A stretch of 64,000 bases of DNA from Caecitellus pseudoparvulus (GCA_965644315.1 CBFFRQ010000068.1:558001-622000), one strand, 5' to 3'. Numbered from the stretch's first letter, positions 2,116-25,544 are shown. Notes: generated from the letters alone by a model not told the origin. Made by a program: numbers and translations.

Positions 2116-5100
2116 TCACTCTGCCGGAGCTACGGATCGGTCCGCCCGACGGAGCCCAGCCGATCGAGATGGTGCGAAAGCAGTGCGTTCTGGGCCCCGA
2201 CCTCGAGAAGGACGCTGCGACGCGGGGGACGCCCGAGAGCTTCCAGGTCGAAGGGCAAGCTGCACTTGAGAAGCGTGCACCAATGGGTTCACGCCACTGA
2301 AACTCTTGACCGGCTTCGGTGTTTGTGGAAGAGATACTCCGTGCCGCCGCAAAACCTTGCCCGCCTTCTTAGACGCGGACGGCATCGCGTACCGCACGAT
2401 CCCGACCACATACGCCAAGCATAGCACCACAGCAGCCACTAAAATTGCAACAACGACAGACACCTCACGCAGGCTAATCCCGATGTTCACCGCGTTCTGC
2501 GCACTCGTGTCCTCCGCTGCCAACAACGCTCCAGGTGCATCACGCAGACCACCTCCCTCGACGCCCACCACCATGCTCTCGCGCACCATCGTCACACCCC
2601 CCACACGACCCACAAACGTCTCATTCCACCCCAACGCCGACATCCCACTGCTCACACTCACGTTCGAAGCGTAGTCAAACGCTGCCGCCGCGTCCACAGC
2701 TGGCAAGTACCGAGTCCACACACCAGACGCAGCTGCAGCCGTGCCGTTCAGCGCCTGCATCGCTGCAGCCCCCAGCTCACGGGCGCCCTCATGCAGCCAG
2801 ATGTTCACGGGGAACTGGTCTGCTGTCGTCTCTTGCGCCGTGCTGAACTCGCGCGCTGTCCCTGCCTGCACCTCCGTCGACAGCAGCGAGTCAAACTGCT
2901 GCTGGCTGGACAGGTACAGCAGCCCCATCAAGCAGAAGGCCGACACGCCCAGCGACGCCGTCTCCAACGAGTTCGCCACCGCGTACGAGAACGGACGCAC
3001 TGTCAAGTGCATCATCAACGACACACACAGCAACGCCAGCCCGATGTGCGCCTGCAGGAACCCGTTGCTCATGAACACCGACAGGAACGCAAACGACACC
3101 TTGCGAGCCAACACCACCCCCTCCCACAGGTACACACGCCCCTGCAGCCGGTACCCCGCATACAGCATCGCGTACGTGTCCCGCATGGACGGATCGGCCA
3201 GCTGGGACCGGCGGCGGTACAGCAAGTACAGCGCCGATGCGGGAATGCCCACCAGGTACACCACCACAGCCACCAGCGCTGTCGCCCACACCGCCGTGTA
3301 CTGCGGGTCAGATGTGGACACGGCGAAGTCCCCCGTCAGGTACGTCTCCCCGCCGATCACGTCACCGTAGGTGTTGAACACCATCAGCACCTGCCGCATG
3401 ATGCCAGGGTACAGGATGAAGAGCAAGGCCGTGGACACACCGATGCTGGTGCTGGCGTACGAGGCAGCTGAGGTCGAGGCTGTCGAGCGCTGGGTCTGAC
3501 TGGAAGGTGAGCCGACCACGGCCCCGCTCACATGTGACCTTGATGCCGCCCCCCTTTGATGCCGCCCTCGGACCAGCGGGTTGGACACAACAGGCATGTC
3601 TCGGGACTCACCGCGTAACCTTGAGGTGTGCTTGGCCTCCCCAGGCTCCCCAGGCTCGGCATCCACACCTGCGCTGCCCTGGCCTGCACGTGCTGCAGGA
3701 CCACGCGTGACAGCCAGTGGGTTACACTTGCTGGTGAGAGACCGGCCCAGGCGGCGATCAATGGCGGCAAAGGGCCGGCCACCATCACCCTCAGCCTCAT
3801 TCCCACCCCCACCACGGTGACAGCACACACATGCAGCGGACCCAAACTTCACAGCATACAGCAGCCACAGTGCCACAGCTGGCAACAGCAGGGCCAAGGG
3901 CGGCAGCGCCATGGTGGCCCAGAAGCGACCAAAGAAGCTCAGGCCACTCGCGCACTGCACCGGGAACAAGGACAGGTTCAGGCCCTCTGCGGAGCTGGTC
4001 ACGGAGAACAGACTCACCACCACAGCAGGTCGAGGCAGATTGAAGGCTGCGATGGACGTCAGCACCTGCACAGTGTTCAGCGCCACACGAATCAGCACCA
4101 ACGTCACAGCCTTGCCACCCTTCAACGTCCGCATCCGCTCCAACACACGTGGGTCGTGCCGCCACGCATCCTCGTCAGAGTACACCGGCGGCGGCAAGCC
4201 CTGCAGCTGGTCATACTGCCGCAGCTGACGTGCCACCTTGCGACTCTGCTTCCGGAACGGACTGCTGCTCACGTTGTTCGCCACAAACGCCCCCACTGCC
4301 AGCAGGATCAAGGCCGTCACACCCAAGTTCGCGCCCATGGACCAACACTTGAAACACTGCTCACCTGACCCCGCATATCCCTCAGCACACACCGCACACA
4401 GCGGACCTGCATACCCCTCAGCACACAGCTCCTGCTCTGCCACCTCCTCCGACCCGCTGCTGCTGTCCACCCCACCACCTGACGGCGCCACCACGCCGCC
4501 TTCCTTGCTCCGGTACACGTCGCCCCCCGCCACCAGCTCAGACACCACCACACATGCCTGGCGGTTCAGGCAGGAGTAGAAGCGGTCCCCGCTCTGCACA
4601 TCCCGCATGTCCACTGCCGGGTCAGGGAAGAACCCCTTCCGCACATACAACAGTCCGTTGTCGCAGATGGTGTTGCCTGGGCACTTGCGACAAGCGGCTG
4701 ACCCAGGGTACGAGAACTCCTCAGCCGCACATGGACCGCACTCAGCCTGGCCCCCACCACTGACATACCCCGGCAAGCACGGCTGGCAAGCCGTCACAGA
4801 CACGCCACCTGCCGCGCCCTGCACCACACCGCCCTCCACAGGCTCATACCCCACCTGGCACTCACACCGCAGCCCATCCCCCGTCACCTGTGTCCCACGC
4901 CCGCGACATGCCGCACGCTGCACCACGATCACCACCTCACCCGCACCCCCACCATCCACACCCACACCGCCCCCCACCCCCCACGGCACGCTCACACTCA
5001 CACGCAGCATGCCCGTCGATGGCGGCTGCACCTGCACCACATGCGTCGACCCCGCCACGCCACCACACTGCTGCTGCACAGCGCCTGCGTCGCTGCTCAC

Positions 5101-8046
5101 CATGACAGGCAAGGACCGCCACCCCCCCTCCACACGTGGCACGACCCCCACTGCCCTGCCCTGCCCATCAGCCAGGAAGGCTCCCTCCACCTCCACCTGC
5201 CCCAGGCCCAGTGGCGACGCCACACCCACCACATCCCGCAACGACACACACACCACAGGCTGCACATCTGCCGACACCACAGTGCGCGGCACCGTGGCAG
5301 ATGACGCCCACGGCGACAGTGCGCCATACACTGGCAGCCCCGTGATGTTCACTGACTGGGCGTCCTGCCCCACATGCTGGGTGGAGTTGGGATCAGGCGC
5401 CCCCCGCGTGCGCAGCGTCAGCTGGGCCGTGTTGGACTCCGGCGCAGCATCCAGTGCCGCCACACCCAGACCTGGCACCTGAGCACCACTCAATGCGCCC
5501 GTGCCCCCGTACCGTGCCGTCAGCCACAACGGCACAGGCGCAGCACGCGCCGCGATGGAGGCTGGCACACTGCCCGCCGCCAGCCACGACCCATCACCCC
5601 CCCCCTGCCCAGACACGCCCACACTCAGCTCCTGCGCCCGCTGAGAGTCCATGGTGTACAGCTGCAGCGGCAGCACCGACCTGGCCATGGGCGCCAGCTC
5701 CACAGCGCCGTCTGCCATGCACAGGAAGGCGCCCGTGGACCGGAAGAACACGCTGAAGCTCTGCACGACCCCGCCAGGCGGAGTGGAGCTGTACACGTGC
5801 AGCGGCACACGGTACGCGTTGACGTCATCAGGCACGATGGCAGTGGGGCCCCGCACCAGCAGCTCCATGGACTCCCCCGCACCCACCGTCAGTGCGCTGC
5901 TCAGCCGCCGCCCAACCACTGTGCCCTGCAGCGTCAACACCTCCAGCAGCTCAGTCTGCGTCACCGCACCCAGACCAGCACCCACGGGCTCTGCCACACC
6001 CACCACCACACTCACATTGCTGTCAGCCTCCTCCCCGCTGTTCTCAATGCGCAGCGGCACCGCAGAGTCGCGCACAGAGCCCTTCGCAGACACCATGTTC
6101 ACCTCCCCTGACTCCACCAACGCCACCGCCAGCACCTGCGGCCCAGTCACCTCCACATACACGGCCATACTCGCGCTCGACGGCAGCCCCGTCAGCACGT
6201 CCTCCTCCACACTGAACACCACACTGCCACTGTGCACACCCCGGGCCAAGCCACCCGTGGACACCCGCAGCGTCACCACGTCCGGCACCTGCACACGGGG
6301 GTCGCCGTACGTCACATTGCCCACATGCTGCAGCCACGACGTGTTGGTGGACACGGTGAAGGCGTACTCGTGGCACTGCACAAGCACTGTGATGTCTGTG
6401 GTGGCAGGGTGTGCAATTCGCAGGGAGACGGTGTCGTTGAGGGCGCGCACTGCACCGGGGATGCGGTTGGGGGACACGGAAGGCGTGATAGATGGAGTGG
6501 CAGTGGGTGACGGTGTAGTTGATGGAGTTGTCGTAACGCTAGGTGTCCCAGACACAGATGGTGTGACGCTGGGCGTCGCTGTGTTGCTTGGAGTGGGCGT
6601 CACGGTGCTGGTCGCAGATGGCGATGCTGACACACATGCCCCGATGCTGTCTCGCGGCAGGTTGCTCCCACGGTTGTTCGGGCAAGAGAGGCATGATGTG
6701 CGCCCGGCGTTAGGTTGGTACTCCGTGTCCTCGCACTCCGCGCACTCTACGCTGCTCACTCCGTACCTGCCTGCCGCGCAAGCACCACAAGTAGTCTGCC
6801 CCGTGGCAGTGGGAGCAGTTGCATACCCCAGCACACAGTCCAGGCATGCTGTCTCCGCTGTGACGTTTGTGAAGCGGCCTGCGACACACTCTAAGCAAGC
6901 TGATTCTCTGGTTGATGCTCCATACCGCCCCGCCTCGCACTCCGTACATGCTGTCGCTGCCCCCGTCGAGTACTCGCCAGCACTGCACACATCACACGCT
7001 GTCGCCTGTGTGGAGCTCATGAACTCGCCAGGCGGGCAGGCTAAACACGCTGACAGGCTGCTGCTGGGCCCGTACCGCCCAGCGTCACAAGGAGTACACG
7101 CACCAGCCCCAGGAGCTGCAGAGTGGAAGCCAGGGCCACATGCGGTGCACGTGGCAGGAGACACGGCGGCAGTGTGTGGTGATGCAGTGCCTGGTGCGCA
7201 CAGGTGGCAGAAGGAAGAGCCTTGCGAGGCTTGGTAGGTGCCGGGACCACATTGGGTGCATCCTGACAGGCCCACGATTTCAGCATGCAAGCCAGGTAAA
7301 CACACATCGCACGAAGACTGTTGCGCGGAGCTTTGGTATTTGCCCTTTGGACACTCAGTGCAGCTGCTTTGTGAGTGCGAGGAAGCCCTCCCAGCTGAGC
7401 AGGCTTGGCAAGTACTGTGTGCACCTCCGTCGCTTGGGGAAAAGAGCCCAGGCTGACAGGCTTCACATTGCAAAGATCCTGGCTGCCCTTGCCACAATCC
7501 CCCATTGCAGTTCTTGCACCCAGCCCTTCCTGTTTGATCTTGGTACTTGCCTCTTACGCATGCCTTGCAACCCTGGCGCCCCTTGTTGTCTTGAAACTTT
7601 CCAGCGCTGCAGTCCTTGCAATCTGATTTCCCTGCTTGGTCTTGAAACTTTCCCAGGGGGCATTTTTTGCAGCCCCCAGCTCCTCTGTTGTCTTGAAAGT
7701 CCCCCTGTGCAGTTCGAGCGGCACTGTGTGCGACGGTGCAAGGCAAACAGGCAGGATTTGGTCGCACCTTGTCGCATGCCTTGCAATTGTTGCGGTTATG
7801 GTTCTTCTTGTTCTGATAGCGCCCCTTACTGCACTTTGGGCAGTTGTTTCCAGCCTTGTACCGACCCCTGCCGCATTGGCCCAACGATCTAGCAGCCACA
7901 CCACCACCAAGGCTGGGTTGAAGTTCATCAAGAACCAAGCCTTCCTCCTGAGATTCAGCAGTTCCAAAGGGGATTCCAAGTTGAAAGAGCACCAAGAAGA
8001 GCAGGACTGGTGCGAAACTGAGCGTCAATGAGGGACGGCGCACCAT
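2116..8046 (-). CDS. Giant Cys-rich surface protein with multi-pass C-terminal domain, paralog 1 (about 1955 aa; intron 7705-7767)
   Basis: Signal peptide MVRRPSLTLSFAPVLLFLVLFQLGIPFGTA; tandem CxxCxxGx(Y/F) repeats (Ephrin_rec_like/GCC2-GCC3 type); Thr/Pro linker; beta-rich region; CAEGYAGPLCAVCAEGY..CFKC; then several hydrophobic helices with LYAGYR..YLWEGVVLARK and HLTVRPF..NSLET motifs typical of protist TRP-like multi-pass domains. In-frame 63-nt GT-AG intron. Confidence 0.85.
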   Translation of the reverse strand: MVRRPSLTLSFAPVLLFLVLFQLGIPFGTAESQEEGLVLDELQPSLGGGVAARSLGQCGRGRYKAGNNCPKCSKGRYQNKKNHNRNNCKACDKVRPNPACLPCTVAHSAARTAQGDFQDNRGAGGCKKCPLGKFQDQAGKSDCKDCSAGKFQDNKGRQGCKACVRGKYQDQTGRAGCKNCNGGLWQGQPGSLQCEACQPGLFSPSDGGAHSTCQACSAGRASSHSQSSCTECPKGKYQSSAQQSSCDVCLPGLHAEIVGLSGCTQCGPGTYQASQGSSFCHLCAPGTASPHTAAVSPATCTACGPGFHSAAPGAGACTPCDAGRYGPSSSLSACLACPPGEFMSSTQATACDVCSAGEYSTGAATACTECEAGRYGASTRESACLECVAGRFTNVTAETACLDCVLGYATAPTATGQTTCGACAAGRYGVSSVECAECEDTEYQPNAGRTSCLSCPNNRGSNLPRDSIGACVSASPSATSTVTPTPSNTATPSVTPSVSGTPSVTTTPSTTPSPTATPSITPSVSPNRIPGAVRALNDTVSLRIAHPATTDITVLVQCHEYAFTVSTNTSWLQHVGNVTYGDPRVQVPDVVTLRVSTGGLARGVHSGSVVFSVEEDVLTGLPSSASMAVYVEVTGPQVLAVALVESGEVNMVSAKGSVRDSAVPLRIENSGEEADSNVSVVVGVAEPVGAGLGAVTQTELLEVLTLQGTVVGRRLSSALTVGAGESMELLVRGPTAIVPDDVNAYRVPLHVYSSTPPGGVVQSFSVFFRSTGAFLCMADGAVELAPMARSVLPLQLYTMDSQRAQELSVGVSGQGGGDGSWLAAGSVPASIAARAAPVPLWLTARYGGTGALSGAQVPGLGVAALDAAPESNTAQLTLRTRGAPDPNSTQHVGQDAQSVNITGLPVYGALSPWASSATVPRTVVSADVQPVVCVSLRDVVGVASPLGLGQVEVEGAFLADGQGRAVGVVPRVEGGWRSLPVMVSSDAGAVQQQCGGVAGSTHVVQVQPPSTGMLRVSVSVPWGVGGGVGVDGGGAGEVVIVVQRAACRGRGTQVTGDGLRCECQVGYEPVEGGVVQGAAGGVSVTACQPCLPGYVSGGGQAECGPCAAEEFSYPGSAACRKCPGNTICDNGLLYVRKGFFPDPAVDMRDVQSGDRFYSCLNRQACVVVSELVAGGDVYRSKEGGVVAPSGGGVDSSSGSEEVAEQELCAEGYAGPLCAVCAEGYAGSGEQCFKCWSMGANLGVTALILLAVGAFVANNVSSSPFRKQSRKVARQLRQYDQLQGLPPPVYSDEDAWRHDPRVLERMRTLKGGKAVTLVLIRVALNTVQVLTSIAAFNLPRPAVVVSLFSVTSSAEGLNLSLFPVQCASGLSFFGRFWATMALPPLALLLPAVALWLLYAVKFGSAACVCCHRGGGGNEAEGDGGRPFAAIDRRLGRSLTSKCNPLAVTRGPAARAGQGSAGVDAEPGEPGEAKHTSRLRGESRDMPVVSNPLVRGRHQRGAASRSHVSGAVVGSPSSQTQRSTASTSAASYASTSIGVSTALLFILYPGIMRQVLMVFNTYGDVIGGETYLTGDFAVSTSDPQYTAVWATALVAVVVYLVGIPASALYLLYRRRSQLADPSMRDTYAMLYAGYRLQGRVYLWEGVVLARKVSFAFLSVFMSNGFLQAHIGLALLCVSLMMHLTVRPFSYAVANSLETASLGVSAFCLMGLLYLSSQQQFDSLLSTEVQAGTAREFSTAQETTADQFPVNIWLHEGARELGAAAMQALNGTAAAASGVWTRYLPAVDAAAAFDYASNVSVSSGMSALGWNETFVGRVGGVTMVRESMVVGVEGGGLRDAPGALLAAEDTSAQNAVNIGISLREVSVVVAILVAAVVLCLAYVVGIVRYAMPSASKKAGKVLRRHGVSLPQTPKPVKSFSGVNPLVHASQVQLALRPGSSRASPASQRPSRGRGPERTAFAPSRSAGLRRADRSVAPAE
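2482..7260. repeat. Copy 1 of a near-identical 4.8-kb direct repeat (coding core of paralog 1)
   Basis: Aligns base for base with 8971-13782 apart from scattered substitutions, one codon indel (PGNTIC vs PGDGVVC) and a length-variable Thr/Pro linker. Confidence 0.95.
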
Positions 8047-8619: not shown

Positions 8620-11600
8620 TCACGCCTTCTTCGCAAGGTGGGCGCTTCGTGACGAGGACTGAGAGGGAACGAAGGCCTGGCGGCGGACTTGCAAGCGACG
8701 AGCTCGCAAAACTGAGGAGCGGACAGCACCAGATTTCGGCATCACCTTGAGATTCAATGCTGGTAAACTTGAGCGTTGACGCTCAGATGCCGGGACAGCC
8801 TTTGCAGAGTGATCAGCGGTGGCTCGGGAGCGCAACTTCAGGACCTTACCTGCCTTCTTGGATGCAGACGGCACTGCATACCGAACCATCGAAAAAATGT
8901 AGGCCAGCAAAAGAAATACAGCTGCGATCACCATGAGAATGACCACTCCGATCTCCCGTGCACTCGCATTGATGTTCACCGCGTCCTGCGCACTCGTGTC
9001 CTCCGCTGCCAACAACGCTCCAGGTGCATCACGCAGACCACCTCCCTCGACGCCCACCACCATGCTCTCGCGCACCATCGTCACACCCCCCACACGACCC
9101 ACAAACGTCTCATTCCACCCCAACGCCGACATCCCACTGCTCACACTCACGTTCGAAGCGTAGTCAAACGCTGCCGCCGCGTCCACAGCTGGCAAGTACC
9201 GAGTCCACACACCAGACGCAGCTGCAGCCGTGCCGTTCAGCGCCTGCATCGCTGCAGCCCCCAGCTCACGGGCGCCCTCATGCAGCCAGATGTTCACAGG
9301 GAACTGGTCTGCTGTCGTCTCCTGCGCCGTGCTGAACTCGCGCGCTGTCCCGGCCTGCACCTCCGTCGACAGCAGCGAGTCAAACTGCTGCTGGCTGGAC
9401 AGGTACAGCAGCCCCATCAAGCAAAAGGCCGACACGCCCAGCGACGCCGTCTCCAACGAGTTCGCCACCGCGTACGAGAACGGACGCACTGTCAAGTGCA
9501 TCATCAACGACACACACAGCAACGCCAGCCCGATGTGCGCCTGCAGGAACCCGTTGCTCATGAACACCGACAGGAACGCAAACGACACCTTGCGAGCCAA
9601 CACCACCCCCTCCCACAGGTACACACGCCCCTGCAGCCGGTACCCCGCATACAGCATCGCGTACGTGTCCCGCATGGACGGATCAGCCAGCTGGGACCGG
9701 CGGCGGTACAGCAAGTACAGCGCCGATGCGGGGATGCCCACCAGGTACACCACCACAGCCACCAGCGCTGTCGCCCACACCGCCGTGTACTGCGGGTCAG
9801 ATGTGGACACGGCAAAGTCCCCCGTCAGGTACGTCTCCCCGCCGATCACGTCGCCGTAGGTGTTGAACACCATTAGCACCTGCCGCATGATGCCAGGGTA
9901 CAGGATGAAGAGCAGGGCCGTGGACACACCAATGCTGGTGCTGGCATACGAGGCAGCTGCGGCCGAGGCTGTCGAGCGCTGGGCCTGACTGGAAGGCGTG
10001 CCGACCACGCCCCCGCTCACAGGTGACCTTGATGCCGCCCCCCTTTGACCCCGCCCTCGGACCAGCGGGTTGGACACAACAGGCATGTCTCGGGACTCAC
10101 CGCGTAACCTTGAGGTGTGCTTGGCCTCCCCAGGCTCCCCAGGCTCGGCATCCACACCTGCGCTGCCCTGGCCTGCACATGCAGCAGGACCACGCGTGAC
10201 AGCCAGTGGGTTACGCTTGCTGGTGAAAGACCGGCCCAGGCGGCGATCAATGGCGGCAAAGGGCCGGCCACCTTCACCCTCAGCCTCTTTCCCACCCTCA
10301 CCACGGCGACAGCATACACACGCAGCGGACCCAAACTTCACAGCATACAGCAGCCACAGTGCCACAGCTGGCAACAGCAGGGCCAAGGGCGGCAGCGCCA
10401 TGGTGGCCCAGAAGCGACCAAAGAAGCTCAGGCCACTTGCGCACTGCACCGGGAACAAGGACAGGTTCAGGCCCTCTGCGGAGCTGGTCACGGAGAACAG
10501 ACTCACCACCACAGCAGGTCGAGGCAGATTGAAAGCTGCGATGGACGTCAGTACCTGCACAGTATTCAGCGCCACACGAATCAGCACCAACGTCACAGCC
10601 TTGCCACCCTTCAACGTCCGCATCCGCTCCAACACACGTGGGTCGTGCCGCCACGCATCCTCGTCAGAGTACACCGGCGGCGGCAAGCCCTGCAGCTGGT
10701 CATACTGCCGCAGCTGACGTGCCACCTTGCGACTCTGCTTCCGGAACGGACTGCTACTCACGTTGTTCGCCACAAACGCCCCCACTGCCAGCAGGATCAA
10801 GGCCGTCACACCCAAGTTCGCGCCCATGGACCAACACTTGAAACACTGCTCACCTGACCCCGCATACCCCTCAGCACACACCGCGCACAACGGACCCGCA
10901 TACCCCTCAGCACACAGCTCCTGCTCTGTCACCTCCTCCGACCCGCTGCTGCTGTCCGCGACACCACCTGACGGCGCCACCACGCCGCCTTCCTTGCTCC
11001 GGTACACGTCGCCCCCCGCCACCAGCTCAGACACCACCACACATGCCTGGCGGTTCAGGCAGGAGTAGAAGCGGTCCCCGCTCTGCACATCCCGCATGTC
11101 CACTGCCGGGTCAGGGAAGAACCCCTTCCGCACATACAACAGTCCGTTGTCGCACACCACGCCATCCCCTGGGCACTTGCGACAAGCGGCTGACCCAGGG
11201 TACGAGAACTCCTCAGCCGCACATGGACCGCACTCAGCCTGACCTCCACCACTGACATACCCCGGCAAGCACGGCTGGCAAGCCGTCACAGACACGCCAC
11301 CTGCCGCGCCCTGCACCACACCGCCCTCCACAGGCTCATACCCCACCTGGCACTCACACCGCAGCCCATCCCCCGTCACCTGTGTCCCACGCCCACGACA
11401 TGCCGCACGCTGCACCACGATCACCACCTCACCCGCACCCCCACCATCCACACCCACACCGCCCCCCACCCCCCACGGCACGCTCACACTCACACGCAGC
11501 ATGCCCGTCGATGGCGGCTGCACCTGCACCACATGCGTCGACCCCACCACGCCGCCACACTGCTGCTGCACAGCGCCTGCGTCGCTGCTCACCATGACAG

Positions 11601-14600
11601 GCAAGGACCGCCACACCCCCTCCACACGTGGCACGGCCCCCACTGCCCTGCCCTGCCCATCAGCCAGGAAGGCTCCCTCCACCTCCACCTGCCCCAGGCC
11701 CAGTGGCGACGCCACACCCACCACATCCCGCAACGACACACACACCACAGGCTGCACATCTGCCGACACCACAGTGCGCGGCACCGTGGCAGATGACGCC
11801 CACGGCGACAGTGCGCCATACACTGGCAGCCCCGTGATATTCACTGACTGGGCGTCCTGCCCCACATGCTGGGTGGAGTTGGGATCAGGCGCCCCCCGCG
11901 TGCGCAGCGTCAGCTGGGCCGTGTTGGACTCTGGCGCAGCATCCAGTGCCGCCACACCCAGACCTGGCACCTGAGCACCACTCAATGCACCCGTGCCCCC
12001 GTACCGTGCCGTCAGCCACAACGGCACAGGCGCAGCACGCGCCACGATGGAAGCTGGCACACTGCCCGCCGCCAGCCACGACCCATCACCCCCCCCCTGC
12101 CCAGACACGCCCACACTCAGCTCCTGCGCCCGCTGAGAGTCCATGGTGTACAGCTGCAGCGGCAGCACCGACCTGGCCATGGGCGCCAGCTCCACAGCGC
12201 CGTCTGCCATGCACAGGAAGGCGCCCGTGGACCGGAAGAACACGCTGAAGCTCTGCACGGCCCCGCCAGGCGGAGTGGAGCTGTACACGTGCAGCGGCAC
12301 ACGGTACGCGTTGACGTCATCAGGCACGATGGCAGTGGGGCCCCGCACCAGCAGCTCCATGGACTCCCCCGCACCCACCGTCAGTGCGCTGCTCAGCCGC
12401 CGCCCAACCACTGTGCCCTGCAGCGTCAACACCTCCAGCAGCTCAGTCTGCGTCACCGCACCCAGACCAGCACCCACGGGCTCTGCCACACCCACCACCA
12501 CACTCACATTGCTGTCAGCCTCCTCCCCGCTGTTCTCAATGCGCAGCGGCACCGCAGAGTCGCGCACAGAGCCCTTCGCAGACACCATGTTCACCTCCCC
12601 TGACTCCACCAACGCCACCGCCAGCACCTGCGGCCCAGTCACCTCCACATACACGGCCATACTCGCGCTCGACGGCAGCCCCGTCAGCACGTCCTCCTCC
12701 ACACTGAACACCACACTGCCACTGTGCACACCCCGGGCCAAGCCACCCGTGGACACCCGCAGCGTCACCAGGTCCGGCACCTGCACACGGGGGTCGCCGT
12801 ACGTCACATTGCCCACATGCTGCAGCCACGATGTGTTGGTGGACACGGTGAAGGCGTACTCGTGGCACTGCACAAGCACTGTGATGTCTGTGGTGGCAGG
12901 GTGTGCAAGTCGCAGGGAGACGGTGTCGTTGAGGGCGCGCACTGCACCGGGGATGCGGTTGGGGGACACGGAAGGCGTGATGCTGGGCGTCACTGTCGGG
13001 GTAACAGTTGAAGAGGGAGTGACGGTGGGAGTGATGGTGACAGTGGCCGTGACACTTGGTGTGACAGTTCCCGATACAGACGGTGTGACACTGGGCGTCG
13101 CTGTGTTGCTTGGAGTGGGCGTCACGGTGCTGGTCGCAGATGGCGATGCTGACACACATGCCCCGATGCTGTCTCGCGGCAGGTTGCTCCCTCGGTTGTT
13201 CGGGCAAGAGAGGCATGATGTGCGCCCGACGTCAGGTTGGTACTCTGTGTCCTCGCACTCCGCGCACTCTACGCTGCTTACACCGTACCTGCCTGCCGCA
13301 CAAGCACCACAAGTCGTCTGCCCCGTGGCAGTGGGAGCAGTTGCATACCCTAGCACACAGTCTAGGCACACTGTCTCCGCCGTGACGTTTGTGAAGCGGC
13401 CTGCGACACACTCTGAACAAGCTGATTCTCTGGTTGATGCCCCGTACCGCCCCACCTCGCACTCAGTACACGCCGTCGCTGCCCCCGTCGAGTACTCGCC
13501 AGCACTGCACACATCACACGCTGTCGCCTGTGTGGAGCCCATGAACTCGCCAGGCGGGCAGGCTAAACATGCTGACAGGCTGCTGCTGGGCCCGTACCGC
13601 CCAGCGCCACAGGGACTACACGCACCAGCCCCAGGTGCTGCAGAGTGGAAGCCAGGGCCACATGCAGTGCACGTGGCAGGAGACACGGCGGCAGTGTGTG
13701 GTGATGCAGTGCCTGGTGCGCACAGGTGGCAGAAGGAAGAGCCTTGCGAGGCTTGGTAGGTACCGGGTCCACATTGGGTGCACGATGTATGGTTCCCCAT
13801 GCTGTCTGTGAAGGTTCCTGTTGCGCATGCTTGGCACACTGTTTGTGCCAAACTGCCTTGATATGTTCCATTGTTACATGGAATGCAAGATAGTCGGTCT
13901 GGCGCAGAGATGAAACCGGGTTGGCAGGCCACACAAGCTGATCTGCCTGAGAACTGCTGTACGAAGCCAAGGGGGCAGTCTTCACACCGACTTTGCCCAG
14001 TGACGTTTTGGTACCTGCCTGGGCCGCATTGGGTGCACTGGCTGAGCCCTGGAGTCGACGTGAATGTTCCACTGGAGCAAGGATCACAGGCGGAGTGGGG
14101 CATTCCATCGGAGGGTGTGATATAGCCAGGGGAGCAGTCCTTGCAGCCAATGGCTGCCGTGCCATTCTGCCACCGACCAGCATCGCACGCTTGGCAATGA
14201 GAAGCAGGTGTCATGAGGCTGTAGCGCCCAGCTTCGCAATCAATGCAGCTGGTTGCAGCTTGACCTTGTGGTGTGTACCGGCCGAGGGGGCAAGTCTTGC
14301 ACGAGTCTTGGGCTGTAAGGTTTTGCCACGTGCCGGATGAGCACGTCAAGCAAACTGTGTCATTCGCAGCAGCTCTAAACCCAGCCACACACTCCAAACA
14401 GGTTGAAGCTCCCGGATTTGGCTGCACCTTTCCACTTTCACAGACCTGGCAGACGCTCGCGGCGGTGCTTGCACTGAACGTTCCAGGTTGGCAGGTCTCA
14501 CAACTTGAAGAGCTCGGCGCCGAAGCAAAGAGCCCTTCTGAGCACTCCGAACACGACGTCGCGGGCGATGAGGGCGGGGAGAAGTATCCGGCCAGGCAGA

Positions 14601-18475: not shown

Positions 18476-21400
18476 TTACAGAAGCACGCTTGCCGATGTG
18501 AGGCGGATTTCGGGGGGGGGGGTGGGTGCTGCTTGCACGCCGGCCTCTGGCTGCAGATCCACACGCTGGTCCTTGCTCTCCTCCGCGCCGCTGTCGCTAT
18601 CGCCCTCGCTACTACTGCTGCTGTCGCTGTCGTTGTCGCTACTGCTACTGCTACTGCTACTGCTACTGCTGCTGCCAATTGTAGCATCGTCATCTCCACT
18701 GACTGTGGCGACGTCAGTCGTCCGCGAAGCATCGGCAGTAGCAGGTGCCGTGGCAGGCAGAGGAGGCGCAATGGTCCGTTTCGCCGCGGCTGAGCCAAGT
18801 TCGTCAGGTTGGCCACTTGTTTCCCTTGCAGCTGCTTCTGGCAAGGGGACTCCGCCAGAGAGGCACGACGCTCCAGCGGGAATGCTGAGCACTGGCACCT
18901 GCTGGAGCAGCAGCTTGGGATTCGTGTGCCAGCTTGCTCGGGCTGGGGGGGCCTTTTTCACCGAAAGCTCCAGCGCTGCAGGATTGGTAGTGGAGCCACC
19001 AGCTGCCATCCTTTCCTTGGCGTTACGTAGCTCGGCTTTCAGCTTCGCCACCTGTGCTTCTGCAGCCTGAGCTCTGGCAGTCGCGAAGTCCGCTGTAGCA
19101 GCAGGAACCAGTGGCTGCCCAGCCACGCCAGCTGCGGCGTCAAGCAGAGCAGCAGGCTCCATTGACCCTTCAGGCATCAGAACTCTGTTTGCAGCCTTCC
19201 ATGTCTCGCGCAGCAGAGAGGGTAGAAGCTCTCGCGCGAGGCGCTGCTTCAGTGGAGCCAGCTCAGACTCGGCTGCTGCTGCAGCAGCGGCCACCTCAAG
19301 CAGGCCCCGGACGTGAGCTTCGATGCTGCGGACCAAAGCCCAGTCATTGGACTGATCGACACCGTACCCGCCCTCAAGCACGGACACAAGCCGGGGCACT
19401 GGCATGGCAGAGGCGAGTTGCGTGGCGACCCACTTGAAGTCCGCTTCGCACAAGTCTAGCTGTCCAACAGGGTCGTCTCTGTGCCCGTCAAAACCTGCAG
19501 ACACGAAGATGATATTGGGAGCGAAGGATTCCACTTCCTGCAAGACGTGCGACTGGAGGCATGACCTCCACTCCGCGCTGCCGCTGCCCGGGGTGAGGCC
19601 TTTGCAGATCAGAGTAACGTTTGCCCCGCCAGCTGAAGGCAGAACTCGTGTGTCCCGTGACCGCCCGTCCTCCGCAGAGCTGATGTTACTGGCAGGGTAT
19701 TCATCTGGGAGGTATTGGTGCACGCTGGCAAAGAGCAACGAGGGGGCGCTTGGATCAGGTCCGTCGCCGGCACGCCTGGAGCGCTTCGGGGAAGGCGGGA
19801 GGCTCTCATCGTCACTGTCTGCAGGGCGCATTAGGTAGGAAAGCGTGTCTGCGTCGGCCACTTCAGATGGGGACAGAGAAGCGTTCAAGGCCTTTGCCAT
19901 GGCGAATGAGCCGTTGCCAAAGTGCACGTCGATGTCCACGACAGCAACGCGGGCTGAAGGTGAGGCACGCAAGACAGCTGCAGCTGCAACCATGACGTTG
20001 TTGACGAGGCAAAAGCCTTGGCTGCCCCCCAATCGACTGCAGCACCCAGCATGGTGCCCCGGAGGTCGCACCAGAGCAAAGGCTGACACCCGCTCCCCTG
20101 ACAGCACGGCTTGCGTGGCCGAGAGGACAGCGCCGACGCAGTGCTGCGTCGCGACGACGGATGCAGGGGAAACAAAGGTGTCCCTCTGTTCCATCGCAGG
20201 CATTGAGTCCTCTTCCTCGTCGTCTGAGATGGGCACCAAGCCGTACCCTGCACGGGGCAAGGGGGGGCTGGGCAAACGGACGTACCTCCGGCGTTTGCGG
20301 CTGCCCCTGCCGACCTGAGACACTGCATCTGCAAGCAAACTGGACTGCGAGAGGGATGCTTGTGAGCCCAGGGGACTCAGCTGCGAGACCGGTGCTGATG
20401 GTTGAGTGCGTTCGGCTCGAAGCCCTGTCCGCTGCTCAGTCGCCTTGTCTCCGGTTTGTGTCAGACTGGCCCAGTACCCCTGACCATGCACAGCCACGAT
20501 GCCTGCGGGTGAGGCAGCAGGCCCGGAAAAATGGAAATCCAGCGCAGTCCCAAGCTTCTGCTGTAGTCTGGAGAGCGGCAGAGACACGCGCAGGGGGCCT
20601 TCCACGTGGACAGGCGGAGTCTGGTGCTTCCAGCATTGCCCTGGCGCCATGATCAGCGTTCGGCGGCGCATGGAAACGGCCAACTCCGCGAGCGCGTGGC
20701 CCAGCCCAGCCCCTTGCATGCCTGCAAACTGGTGCAAAGGCTGGTCGACGCCGAGAAAAGCCAACGCAGCGCTCGTGTGCTGGGCGGCAAACAAGGAACT
20801 GGGCAACATAAGTCCACAGGGCGTGCGGATTGAGGAGCTTGGGCGAGTTGGGGGTGGAACTTCAGAGTGTGGGATGGGGGCAGACGGTGTCGAACCCACC
20901 GCTGAGCTCGCATCAGCAGGCCGTGCCACGCTGCTTGGCATGGCTACAACTGCCCTGGCAGGTGAGGAGCGAGTAGTAGGGCTCTTCAGACCCAGAAGAG
21001 ATGTTGCCTGGTCAGGTTCGTGTGTGGTCTTGGGTGCAGCAGGCTGTGCGGGAGCCGGTGCGACCAGAGGCTGAGTGGCATCTCGATGCTCTGCCCCACG
21101 TGCACCACCCCAAGAAGCAAGCTGAGAGTGCCGTGGATGCGCCCCTGGGGGCACTGCAGCTGCACTGGGTGCGGGGCCAGGAGCTGGCAGAACTGACGAG
21201 GGGAGAGTCGAGGATGCGGCCATTGCTGAGGGTTGAGCGCCACGACTTGCTTCTTGTCCGGCCAGGACCGACATGTCTGGGTGCAAAGCTGTGAACTGGG
21301 GCGCAGGGTGTGGCACAGCTGTCCCACGGCCAGTCGCTGCCACTGCCCGTGCTTGCACTCTCGTGGATGGCAAGGAATCTGGCGCTGCGAACGAGCCAGC

Positions 21401-22450: not shown

Positions 22451-25400
22451 ATGGCGTTGTGTCCCAACCGCTGTGGCAGCCTGCTCAACGTGTTGTTTGC
22501 TCTTGCTTTTCTGGGCTTCTTCGCTTACTCGGGTAACCAGGTAGGAGAGCCCATGAGCCTGCGAAAGGTCCAAAAGGTGGCTCAATTACCGCTCCCGATT
22601 GCGCTCCAGATTGTTCACGTCATCTCACCACCGGCAAGTGCCAGCGGCTCTGGCACCATCAACCCCACCTGGAAGGTGCGCCATGCACTGAGGGGTGCAT
22701 TTCGCCGTGCTCAACTTCCACGCGTGTTCCGTACAGGTTGGAAGCCCGGTTCAGGTACTGGCCGCCCTGAGCACGCAGGCGACCAACGTCTCGCCTGAAC
22801 GCCTTCACTCAGCTGTCGTCGTGTTGAACGCCTCGTCAAGTTATGACTATGCCAGAGAGTCCCAAGCTGCCATTGACATAACTCTGGCACTCCCTCTTCA
22901 CGGGAAATTTCAGCCATCAAACCTGCTGCCTGGAGACTTGCCTGATCCGCACATCGACTCAGTGGCGCCCCCACCAGGGTCGCGCCAGGCCAAGGAAGCC
23001 TCCCGACTTCAAGCCTCCCTTCGCAGTGGTCATGCAGTGTTCTTGTGGGTTTGGCTTCAGCAGTTGGGTGGGACTTCACACCCGCGCTTGACGTCCGTCG
23101 TGCCCCTCATGATTCGCAAACCGTTCAAGCCGCCAGCTCACCGCAGCAAGCTGTGGGAGGCGGACCCCTCAGCTTGGCTAGGCTTTCGTCTTCTGGCATC
23201 TGTCCCGCCACCACCTGCCTGGTGGCCTGCAGAAGGCGCTGATACAGCCCAGTGGCTGGGTGCGGCAGACATTCGCGTATCCGTGGACACAACGCGGTAT
23301 CCGGCTGGAATGGCAGGCATGAATCCCTTCCAGCGCTCCCTGCTGTCTCAGAACCTGGTACATGCAGAGGGCTATGCACCCGCGCTCTCAGTCAACTCCA
23401 TCCGACCAGTGGCAGAGCGCAGGCGCTGGGCGCTGGCGGCCAACTCCAGCGCTGTGGCGCTGCCGCTGCACATCACAGCAACCTTCACTTCTCCGCAGCA
23501 GGCAAACCTGCTGCATATCATGGACGCCAGTCTCTCACAGCAGCAGGATCAGATGGGCCTGGCAGACTCTGACACGGACGATGTTGTGCGGCTACTGGTG
23601 GATACGCCGCTGTGGCTGTTGGGGCTGACCTTCCTCATTTCAGCCGTGCACCTCTGCCTTGACGTGCTGGCTTTCGCCAACGATGTCAGCTTTTGGAGTG
23701 CTGTGTCAACTTCCACCCTTTCCCGTCTCTCCTTGCGAGCGCTGGCTGCTGACCTGCTGTGCCAGAGCATCGTGGGGGCGTACCTGTGGCAGAATGCGGC
23801 CTCTGTCTTGCTGCTCATCCCAACCGCCCTTGGCATCGCTGTTGGAGCGTGGAAACTGTCCAAGACCCTTGCTAGTAGTCAAGGTGCTTCTTTCACCACC
23901 CCGGCCACGCCAAGTCAGCGGTACGATGCGGAGGCGGCGCAGTACATGCTATGGCTCCTTGCGCCGCTGTTGCTTGGTTGGGCAGCGTTTGCGTTGATTA
24001 TGAATGGTGCGTGCCTTTGCTCCGATGCCTCCACTTTCGCCAATGACGAGGAGGTAAAAGGGCTGACCAGTGGCAGCCACCTTGCGCTTGCAGCCTTGCT
24101 TCCCCTGCTCGTGTGTCTTGTGTTTACTGTTGTGTGTTGCTGCTGACAAGCTGGGTGGCGAAAACAGGCCACTGTGTGCGTGCTGACAGAAAGGCAAATC
24201 TGAGGCGATAAACTTAAATCCTGCCGGAAGCCAAGAATCAGCGTACTCTACTCAGCACCCCCGCCCTTCCCGCCCTTGCAGAACACCAAGGCTGGGGAGA
24301 CTATGCGCTGAGCACGGCAGTGGCGGCGGTGTACGCCTCCGGGTTTGCGCTGGCCTGCCCCCAGTTGCTCATCAACTACCGCCTAAAGTCTGTGGCGCAC
24401 ATGCCTTGGTCTGTGCTGTTCTACCGCTGGTGCAGCGTTTGCATTGGTGAGATGCGCCGGTGCCTGCCGAAGCCAAGCTGCGCCACCCATGCATGTGCCA
24501 CCCTTGCTGCCCACTTGCGCAGACGATGTCTTTGCATTCATCATCAAAATGCCGACATTGCACCGCCTTTCTGTGTTCCGTGACGACGTGGTGTTCCTCC
24601 TGTACCTGGCTCAGCGCTGGTACTACCCAGTTGATTCCGGGCGCACTGCCACCGTGACAGGGGAGGGGGAGCTGCCCCCACCCGCGGAAGCTGGACCCGC
24701 AAGCGATCATCCAAAGCCAAGGAAGGGTGCGTGCTCCGCAAGGGAAGCCTACGCGACGCTGTTGACGTCAGATTCGTTCCTGCCTGGGGTGCAGGCACTA
24801 GCGTTCAGCCTGCGCCGCTTTGACTCCACCAGGCCTCTGCTGGTGCTGCACACGCCAAGTGTCAAGCGCCACACACGCATTATGTTGTCCAGACTGCAAG
24901 GCGCGCAGTTAGTGCCAGTGGATGACATCCCCTGTCCACATGCGGAGCAAGTGCATGTGGACGGGTGGGTGAACTCTGGCTACACCAAGCTGCACATTTG
25001 GAGTCTCACTGACTGGCATCGCATCGTGTACCTGGATGCGGACACGCTTGTCATGGCTGACATATCTGATTTGTTCACCTGCCCCACCCCTGCAGCAGCT
25101 CCAGACGTCTTCCCTCCGGATAAGTTCAACGCTGGGGTACTTGCCATCACGCCCAGCACATCAGAGTTCGAGCGGCTGCGACGGGCAGTGCCCACAGCGC
25201 CTTCACACGATGGCGGGGACACAGGATTCTTGAACAGCATGTACCCTGGCTGGTTCTCGGGGGCAGAGGGTCACCGGCTGCCCTTCGGGGACAATGCCCA
25301 GCGCATCTTGCACTGGTTCACTGCCGAGCAAGCGCCTGGGTACTGGGAGGCTGTGCAGCCGCTCCGGGTGCTGCACTTCAGCAGCTCGCCAAAGCCCTGG

Positions 25401-25544
25401 GAAGGCGAGGGCGCCCGGCGCAAGGGGGAGCTGGAGATGCTCTGGTGGCGGACGTGGATGGCAAGCAAAGTGCCACCCGGGTTGGGGCAGCTTCTGGCGG
25501 GCGGAGGCGATGGCTCCGCGCCGCAGACAAATTCGTCAAAATGA
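22451..25544 (+). CDS. CLPTM1-family lipid scramblase fused in frame to a C-terminal glycogenin-like GT8 glycosyltransferase (870 aa; exons 22451-22540, 22610-22675, 22737-24006, 24282-24446, 24523-25544)
   Basis: CLPTM1 motifs: LAFANDVSFW, EHQGW, PQLLINYRLKSVAHMPW, DDVFAFIIKMP.LHRL..FRDDVVF.LYL.QRW.YPVD. GT8 motifs: EAYATLL, YTKLHIW, YLDADT, FNAGV, DGGDTGFLN, HF.SSPKPW. No stop between the domains and no Met before the GT8 first strand. Exon lengths sum to 2613 nt = 871 codons. Confidence 0.88.
24037..24208 (+). ncRNA. Intronic box C/D guide RNA (scaRNA-like), predicted to direct 2'-O-methylation of U5 snRNA G37 and U41 (human numbering)
   Basis: Terminal stem TCGCC/GGCGA; box C ATGACGA 24043-24049; D' CTGA 24063-24066; C' GTGCTGA 24180-24186; D CTGA 24200-24203. 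Guides GGTAAAAGG and GAAAGGCAAA are complementary to U5 loop 1 GCCUUUUAC. Long internal hairpin with a UG-rich apex. Lies in an unusually long 275-nt intron (24007-24281). Confidence 0.85.

Follow-up and report, generated by a model that had tools for sequence, protein, structure and literature searches.

A predicted intron-encoded box C/D RNA with guides for two positions in loop 1 of U5 snRNA in Caecitellus pseudoparvulus

An RNA of the box C/D class predicted within an intron of a CLPTM1-family gene of Caecitellus pseudoparvulus is very probably a functional guide that directs 2'-O-methylation of U5 snRNA at two positions, the equivalents of human G37 and U41. Both positions lie in loop 1, the part of U5 that holds the exons during splicing. 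The RNA was located in a 64,000-nt stretch of genomic DNA (the window), and its assignment is based upon the sequence of the intron, the U5 gene of the same genome and orthologous introns in four further lineages. U5-directed C/D guidance of both sites is already known, and the core result is, as far as sequence can indicate, what would be expected from the conservation of U5 methylation. Two traits are uncommon: the presence of both loop-1 guides on one RNA, an arrangement not found in the surveyed literature, and a GU-rich hairpin tip of vertebrate type, here in a lineage of marine protists. A putative localisation element outside the vertebrates would be of specialist interest. One intronic RNA serving both U5 sites would represent a compact solution kept over deep divergence, and this two-guide RNA would provide an additional case of RNA-guided snRNA modification outside animals and plants.

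The guide RNA, its host intron and its U5 target

The host gene encodes a membrane protein of the CLPTM1 family, as established by a Pfam match (PF05602) on the exon product and by a protein atlas search, which returned the CLPTM1 family only. Splicing of the intron that carries the RNA (Table 1) was observed in a metatranscriptome contig that joins 24005 to 24281, skipping 275 nt with GT..AG ends. The RNA runs were analyzed as Logan contigs, from which splicing is readable and none of which covers the intron itself. The guide-bearing intron is unusually long for this gene, since the next intron (24447-24522) comprises only 76 nt.

The features that characterize the box C/D class are present within the intron, i.e. 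a box C near the 5' end, a box D near the 3' end and a short stem joining them. The fifth base upstream of box D' is A24058 and the fifth base upstream of box D is C24195, while the 3' splice site lies 78 nt past the end of box D. An earlier note on this DNA, made from sequence without database searches, had described the 275-nt intron, the TCGCC/GGCGA stem, boxes C, D', C' and D, the two fifth bases and the 78-nt spacing, and all of these were recovered when the sequence was read again, with the intron ends additionally borne out by the spliced contig. The folding energy of the whole RNA was no better than that of shuffled sequences (z = 0.22), a non-significant score being usual for C/D RNAs.

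Table 1. Coordinates of the host intron and of the predicted guide RNA features, counted from the first letter of the window.
Feature	Coordinates	Strand	Remarks
Host intron, CLPTM1-family gene	24007..24281	+	275 nt; GT at 24007, AG at 24280-24281
Predicted mature box C/D guide RNA	24037..24208	+	172 nt; bounded by the terminal stem
Terminal stem, 5' strand (UCGCC)	24037..24041	+	5 bp with 24204-24208
Box C (AUGACGA; C at position 5)	24043..24049	+	read from sequence
D' guide, 13-nt spacer	24050..24062	+	24053-24061 pair with U5 C36-C44 (own numbering)
Box D' (CUGA)	24063..24066	+	read from sequence
Long apical hairpin, D' to C'	24067..24179	+	single hairpin on folding, in all orthologues
GU-rich hairpin tip, candidate G.U/U.G wobble stem	24110..24139	+	GT/TG content
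Box C' (GUGCUGA; imperfect)	24180..24186	+	read from sequence
D guide, 13-nt spacer	24187..24199	+	24189-24198 pair with U5 U32-U41 (own numbering)
Box D (CUGA)	24200..24203	+	read from sequence
Terminal stem, 3' strand (GGCGA)	24204..24208	+	complementary to 24037-24041

The Rfam U5 model identified a single U5 gene (contig C68:1260445-1260562; 41.5 bits, above the gathering score of 40), located 638 kb beyond the window, and a DNA search of the genome detected no second copy. The loop context of this U5 is CAACUUUGCCUUUUACCAAGUUG, containing UUUGCCUUUUACC, and its 11-nt loop extends from U34 to C44 (own numbering) above the closing pair U33-A45. The D' guide forms nine Watson-Crick pairs with this U5 and the D guide ten pairs, one of them G.U; the D guide duplex can form only if the closing stem opens at its two uppermost pairs. 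According to the D+5 rule, the methylated base is the partner of the fifth nucleotide upstream of D or D'. On the D' side, A24058 faces U39, which corresponds to human U41; on the D side, C24195 faces G35, which corresponds to human G37. Both guides have the form expected of antisense elements, with at least eight pairs ending one base before D or D' and the target at position 5.

The same earlier note had predicted the host U5 loop UUUGCCUUUUACC from the guides alone and had placed the two guides in register with U41 and G37. The only U5 gene of the genome contains exactly this loop and pairs with both guides, with the two equivalents at the fifth position. Six U5 bases are common to the two duplexes, so one U5 molecule cannot hold both guides at once, and the sequential engagement that had been proposed would follow from this overlap.

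From these data we infer accumulation of the RNA, binding of the core proteins, methylation, the order of the two events and a nuclear location. The CLPTM1 intron would be spliced out and then trimmed by exonucleases to a guide RNA of about 172 nt, which would assemble with the C/D core proteins fibrillarin, Nop56, Nop58 and Snu13. Pairing of the D' guide with U5 loop 1 would direct 2'-O-methylation of U39 (human U41), and pairing of the D guide with the overlapping stretch, once the two uppermost stem pairs had opened, would direct methylation of G35 (human G37). Modification of both sites on one U5 would involve two separate binding events.

Conservation in other lineages

In order to find orthologues, an exhaustive protein search was performed with the upstream exon alone as query, along with follow-up searches, the exons being searched separately. 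Four further lineages were found (L019, L020, L028 and L029), with a host exon 48-55% identical to that of the window; the identity is 55% for L019 and 48% for L020, and L028 and L029 are 66-70% identical to L020. The gene order histone deacetylase, CLPTM1, Ebp2 is kept in L020, L028 and L029, the L019 contig being too short for a gene-order comparison. Each of the four contains an intron of 217-271 nt at the identical codon position, and each of these introns contains an orthologous RNA.

Conservation of boxes and guides in relatives had been named in the earlier note as a point on which the proposal would stand or fall, and they are conserved in the four further lineages. Two modules, stem-C-guide-D' and C'-guide-D-stem, span 29-30 nt in all five lineages, with mean pairwise identities of 0.78 and 0.76 and with 19 and 17 invariant columns, respectively. 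In the two intron flanks and in the internal part, the corresponding identities were 0.34-0.36. Before D', GUAAAAGG is invariant and stands at an exact distance from the box in five of five lineages; before D, AAGGCA is likewise invariant in all five. The fifth base is A upstream of D' and C upstream of D in every lineage.

The inner three pairs of the terminal stem are fixed in the five lineages. At the outer position, U-A alternates with G-C in two lineages and with a C.A mismatch in two others, and at the second position C-G, U-A, G.U and an A.G mismatch all occur. The stem thereby includes covarying pairs. A single base separates the stem from box C in all five lineages. Box C retains UGAC throughout, always with C rather than U at position 5, and is degenerate in L029 (GUGACUU). 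Box D is CUGA in four of the five lineages and CCGA in L019. The end of box D is found 66-76 nt from the 3' splice site in the four orthologues, and the range of 66-78 nt is the spacing favoured for processing of mammalian intronic C/D RNAs.

Boxes C' and D' occur at conserved positions, with one of the two imperfect in every lineage. Box D' is CUGA in the window and in L019 and CUGC in L020, L028 and L029, while the C' position in the four orthologues, 13-14 nt upstream of D, is occupied by UUGACGA, GUGAUGA, GUGAUGA and GUGAAGA. Given this recurrent imperfection, the main residual doubt regarding the proposed function is that the D' guide might act more weakly than the D guide.

Carried further, this doubt would leave the D guide (G37 equivalent) as the only catalytic one, with the D' element conserved for some other reason, e.g. 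recruitment of U5. Such a division is compatible with the C' sequence of the window, where GUGCUGA loses the A of the sheared G.A pair, with the CUGC form of D' in L020, L028 and L029, and with the C'/D' kink-turn, for which no clean geometry could be drawn from the sequence. Active eukaryotic guides, however, often possess degenerate C'/D' boxes. Furthermore, neither GUAAAAGG nor the exact spacing between it and D' varies among the five lineages, and position 5 of the register always falls on the U41 equivalent, a base that carries methylation in human, fly and Arabidopsis. The two duplexes also overlap, hence the D' element would be unable to add simultaneous pairing. An RNA with the D guide alone active is considered unlikely, and guidance of both sites is the reading retained here.

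Four additional loci (L002, L016, L017 and L018) represent population variants, 97.4-99% identical over the 311 nt compared. Seven differences fall inside the intron, all of them within 24067-24144, in the internal part. This clustering is weakly in agreement with constraint on the boxes and guides, the flanks being equally unchanged. The more distant CLPTM1 loci of L003 and L021 were set aside, having no intron at the position, as were L022 and L023 (39% identity), in which a long intron is present there with a (GT)n run and with no recognisable guide or D box. For L019, the guides predict U5 loop flanks of approximately GCUGCCUUUUACGAU; guide sequences would in this manner forecast U5 loop flanks in uncultured relatives.

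Other targets, other roles and chance

Among U5 and the organism's own rRNA, the only strong target was loop 1 of U5, a spliceosomal snRNA. An ordinary nucleolar snoRNA directed at rRNA or at another target, with an incidental complementarity to U5, could account for the D guide to some extent, as this guide forms at best 8-9 pairs, with one or two G.U, in the SSU and LSU rRNA. There is also precedent in fly, where some scaRNAs have dual snRNA and rRNA targets (PMC3884663). The rRNA matches of the D guide are, however, shorter and contain more wobbles than its U5 duplex, and the D' guide has no match of at least eight pairs in the mature SSU and LSU rRNA of the organism. Both guides fall on one 13-nt loop, at two sites methylated elsewhere, and the conserved guide cores are the exact complement of the invariant U5 loop. 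A nucleolar snoRNA is thus very unlikely.

Two conserved U5-complementary segments in an unusually long intron might also constitute a regulatory element that binds the U5 snRNP through loop 1 and modulates splicing of the host intron, rather than a guide. Each segment lies one base from its D or D' box, the canonical offset, within a C/D skeleton with its terminal stem and with fixed 13-14 nt spacers, and a simple U5 decoy would have no need of a C/D skeleton. An intronic splicing regulator is accordingly held to be even less probable than a nucleolar snoRNA, and a methylation guide for U5 remains the preferred interpretation.

Estimates of chance expectation were obtained from the window and from the genome. 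When the window was scanned for C and D boxes flanked by a perfect 5-bp stem, one occurrence was obtained on the plus strand (24037-24208) and one on the minus strand; in shuffled windows the same C/D skeleton occurred with a mean of 0.08 per window, both strands together. Pairing with U5 over nine or more pairs, no more than one of them G.U, was found for 10 of the 519 CTGA sites in the window. Only two of these ten sites have loop 1 as the target, both of them in the 24037-24208 RNA, and the other eight are directed to GC-rich parts of U5. Either guide-plus-box pattern has two occurrences in the 30.6-Mb genome, and only in the 24007-24281 intron are both found together. That short motifs should merely have come together by chance in a long intron is exceedingly improbable. 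The box motifs are indeed short, and a 9-pair match somewhere in U5 is found for about 9% of the CTGA sites of this GC-rich window when G.U pairs are tolerated. Against this, the skeleton is expected 0.08 times per window, loop 1 is matched by the two sites of this RNA only, both guide patterns occur together at a single genomic location, and the footprint across five lineages refutes a chance origin.

Matches to the single-guide patterns in L005 and L007 were rejected, C/D context being absent. The two-guide pattern had three matches in metagenome contigs, which were attributed to chance; all three lack both a C box and a stem and are situated in bacterial-looking or coding sequence. A search of the genome for a guide to the C45-equivalent site, C43 in the organism's own numbering, gave a 5' splice site as its sole match, which was also rejected.

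Known U5 guides and the GU-rich hairpin tip

In order to relate the RNA to described families, the region 23900-24400 was scanned against Rfam at permissive settings, a scan that the earlier note had called for. The only notable match was SCARNA6 (human U88), at 24038-24207 with 20 bits and an E value of 0.0011, a weak end-to-end match, below the gathering score, to a guide for U41 of U5. The alignment runs from the first to the last position of the model and covers the C box with the U5-U41 guide and D', as well as box D and the stem; the L019 orthologue matched the same model, likewise end to end, with 18.3 bits. Membership in SCARNA6 (RF00478) was rejected: the match falls well short of the 68 bits set as gathering score, the alignment passes over 161 central positions of the model, and the composite C/D and H/ACA architecture of the family was not found. 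The skipped positions correspond to the human H/ACA domain. The RNA is a predicted functional analogue of SCARNA6 that stands outside the family, and the similarity may have been imposed by the common target, not by descent.

Three U5 loop methylations are common to human, fly and Arabidopsis (PMC7960923, PMC13228274, PMC8053127), and the guides reported for them provide the closest comparisons. In human, Um41 is guided by scaRNA5/6, while Gm37 has no listed guide in a 2021 review of snRNA modification (PMC7960923). SCARNA5 and SCARNA6 (U87/U88) resemble the present RNA in being intron-encoded and in possessing a guide before D' that matches the U5 loop through the GUAAAAGG core and addresses the same uridine. 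In contrast, the model consensus indicates that the D-side guide of human SCARNA6 lacks complementarity to the region around G37. In Drosophila, U5 Gm38 and Um42 have been mapped (PMC13228274) and the scaRNAs mgU5-38 and mgU5-42 described (PMC3884663). Compared by description, these address the equivalents of the same two U5 sites, but with two separate RNAs in fly where a single RNA is found here. Arabidopsis U5 contains Gm40, Um44 and Cm48, of which the first has SnoR102 as its assigned guide, the last SnoR130, and Um44 none (PMC8053127, Table 3). SnoR102, again compared by description, is similar in guiding methylation of the G37 equivalent, whereas no RNA carrying both guides is reported for Arabidopsis in that study (PMC8053127).

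The interval between D' and C' ranges from 68 to 113 nt and folds as one long hairpin in every lineage. In vertebrates, intronic C/D scaRNAs possess an apical hairpin with a GU/UG-repeat terminal stem-loop, a Cajal-body localisation element that is needed for WDR79 binding (PMC4041459). The predicted RNA resembles vertebrate U90 and mgU2-47 in being an intronic C/D RNA with a long apical hairpin and a GU/UG tip, and its tip is GU-rich in all five lineages. It differs in that the targets in vertebrates are U2 and U1, as opposed to U5, and in that the element has been described as a vertebrate one. Localisation of fly C/D scaRNAs involves an extended CAB-like motif (PMC4041459), in place of which a GU-rich tip is found here, and localisation of plant guides is uncharacterised (PMC8053127).

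By analogy with the vertebrate wobble stem, the GU-rich tip probably serves as a localisation or protein-binding signal. The odds that it is, strictly speaking, an RNA of Cajal bodies are about even, with the snRNA target and the conserved GU-rich tip as support. A more far-reaching proposal would combine a true wobble-stem localisation signal, either far more ancient than the vertebrates or arisen twice, a WDR79-like reader in this protist lineage, and one RNP that serves the two U5 sites successively; this combination is advanced tentatively, as somewhat short of an even chance. The conserved GU-rich tip offers a testable handle on the age of the localisation signal of vertebrate C/D scaRNAs. 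A Pfam search for Coilin_N gave no match in the genome, nor in any control genome, and is therefore uninformative.

The tip corresponds to the most GT/TG-rich 32-mer on the plus strand of the window. The hairpin tip alone gave no significant folding z-score, the energy model crediting wobble stems little. Three further genome copies of the shared 13-nt GU motif were rejected, none being in a C/D context. Among L020, L028 and L029 the sequences of the hairpin stem are nearly all different, and compensatory double changes were observed in 9 of the 26 predicted hairpin pairs. The sequence of the tip is partly conserved (UGUUGUGU or UGUGUGUGU). The L020 tip permits seven wobble pairs and one Watson-Crick pair, and the tip of L002, a variant of the same species as the window, permits wobble pairs at 9 of 13 positions, the window copy being less regular. 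In L019, eight consecutive wobble pairs with a 3-nt loop are possible atop a GC stem.

Relatives of the guide-RNA host gene

The last exon of the gene that hosts the predicted box C/D guide RNA for U5 encodes, in frame with the CLPTM1 C-terminus, a glycosyltransferase family 8 (GT8; glycogenin-like) domain. The exon was considered together with L029, a further lineage with the orthologous RNA in the same intron, and with protein P0008. An intronless relative (845 aa) and the syntenic relatives suggest that CLPTM1-GT8 is a conserved fusion or a very tight linkage.

In a CLPTM1 relative with 39% identity, represented by the more distant loci L022 and L023, the codon position of the guide-RNA intron is also occupied by a long intron. 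Within this intron are a (GT)n run and a stretch reading AUGACGG-GUAAGAAG; neither a D box nor a U5 guide was found in it at either locus. It may be a version of the guide RNA that has decayed or been replaced.

Coordinates of the features described in the window, in related sequences and on other contigs of the genome
Feature	Location	Strand	Content
Host gene last exon	24523-25544	+	CLPTM1 C-terminus, then GT8 domain
Stretch considered with the last exon	L029:3759-5258		
Long intron, CLPTM1 relative	L022:4571-4811		
Long intron, CLPTM1 relative	L023:2160-2385		
Guide-RNA apical part	24067-24144		
G/V-rich coding stretch, copy 1	~2580-6240	-	
G/V-rich coding stretch, copy 2	~9070-12730	-	
Second C/D skeleton	19609-19815	-	C box, D box, 5-bp stem
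SSU-like sequence	C91:18239-19866		
SSU, organelle or bacterial type	C213:27842-29337		1496 nt

Within-species variation of the apical part

Between the window and its population-level variants (L002, L016, L017, and L018), the apical part of the guide RNA differed at 7 of 79 positions, compared with a within-species difference of ~1.2% across the surrounding 8.6 kb. One of these changes was an indel through which the GU run becomes more regular in the other haplotype.

Additional features of the window and genome

Another C/D skeleton lies within a histone-deacetylase reading frame; no U5 complementarity was found in it, and it is probably a chance occurrence. The window scan for GT-rich runs also surfaced a long G/V-rich coding stretch that is present twice, in nearly identical form, at a spacing of ~6.5 kb; the pair looks like a tandem duplication of part of a large gene.

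Nuclear rDNA was present as a tandem array on contig C81, with a repeat of ~8.45 kb and a short SSU of 1697 nt. Two other contigs contained SSU or SSU-like sequences, and that on C91 was matched by the model in four separate pieces.
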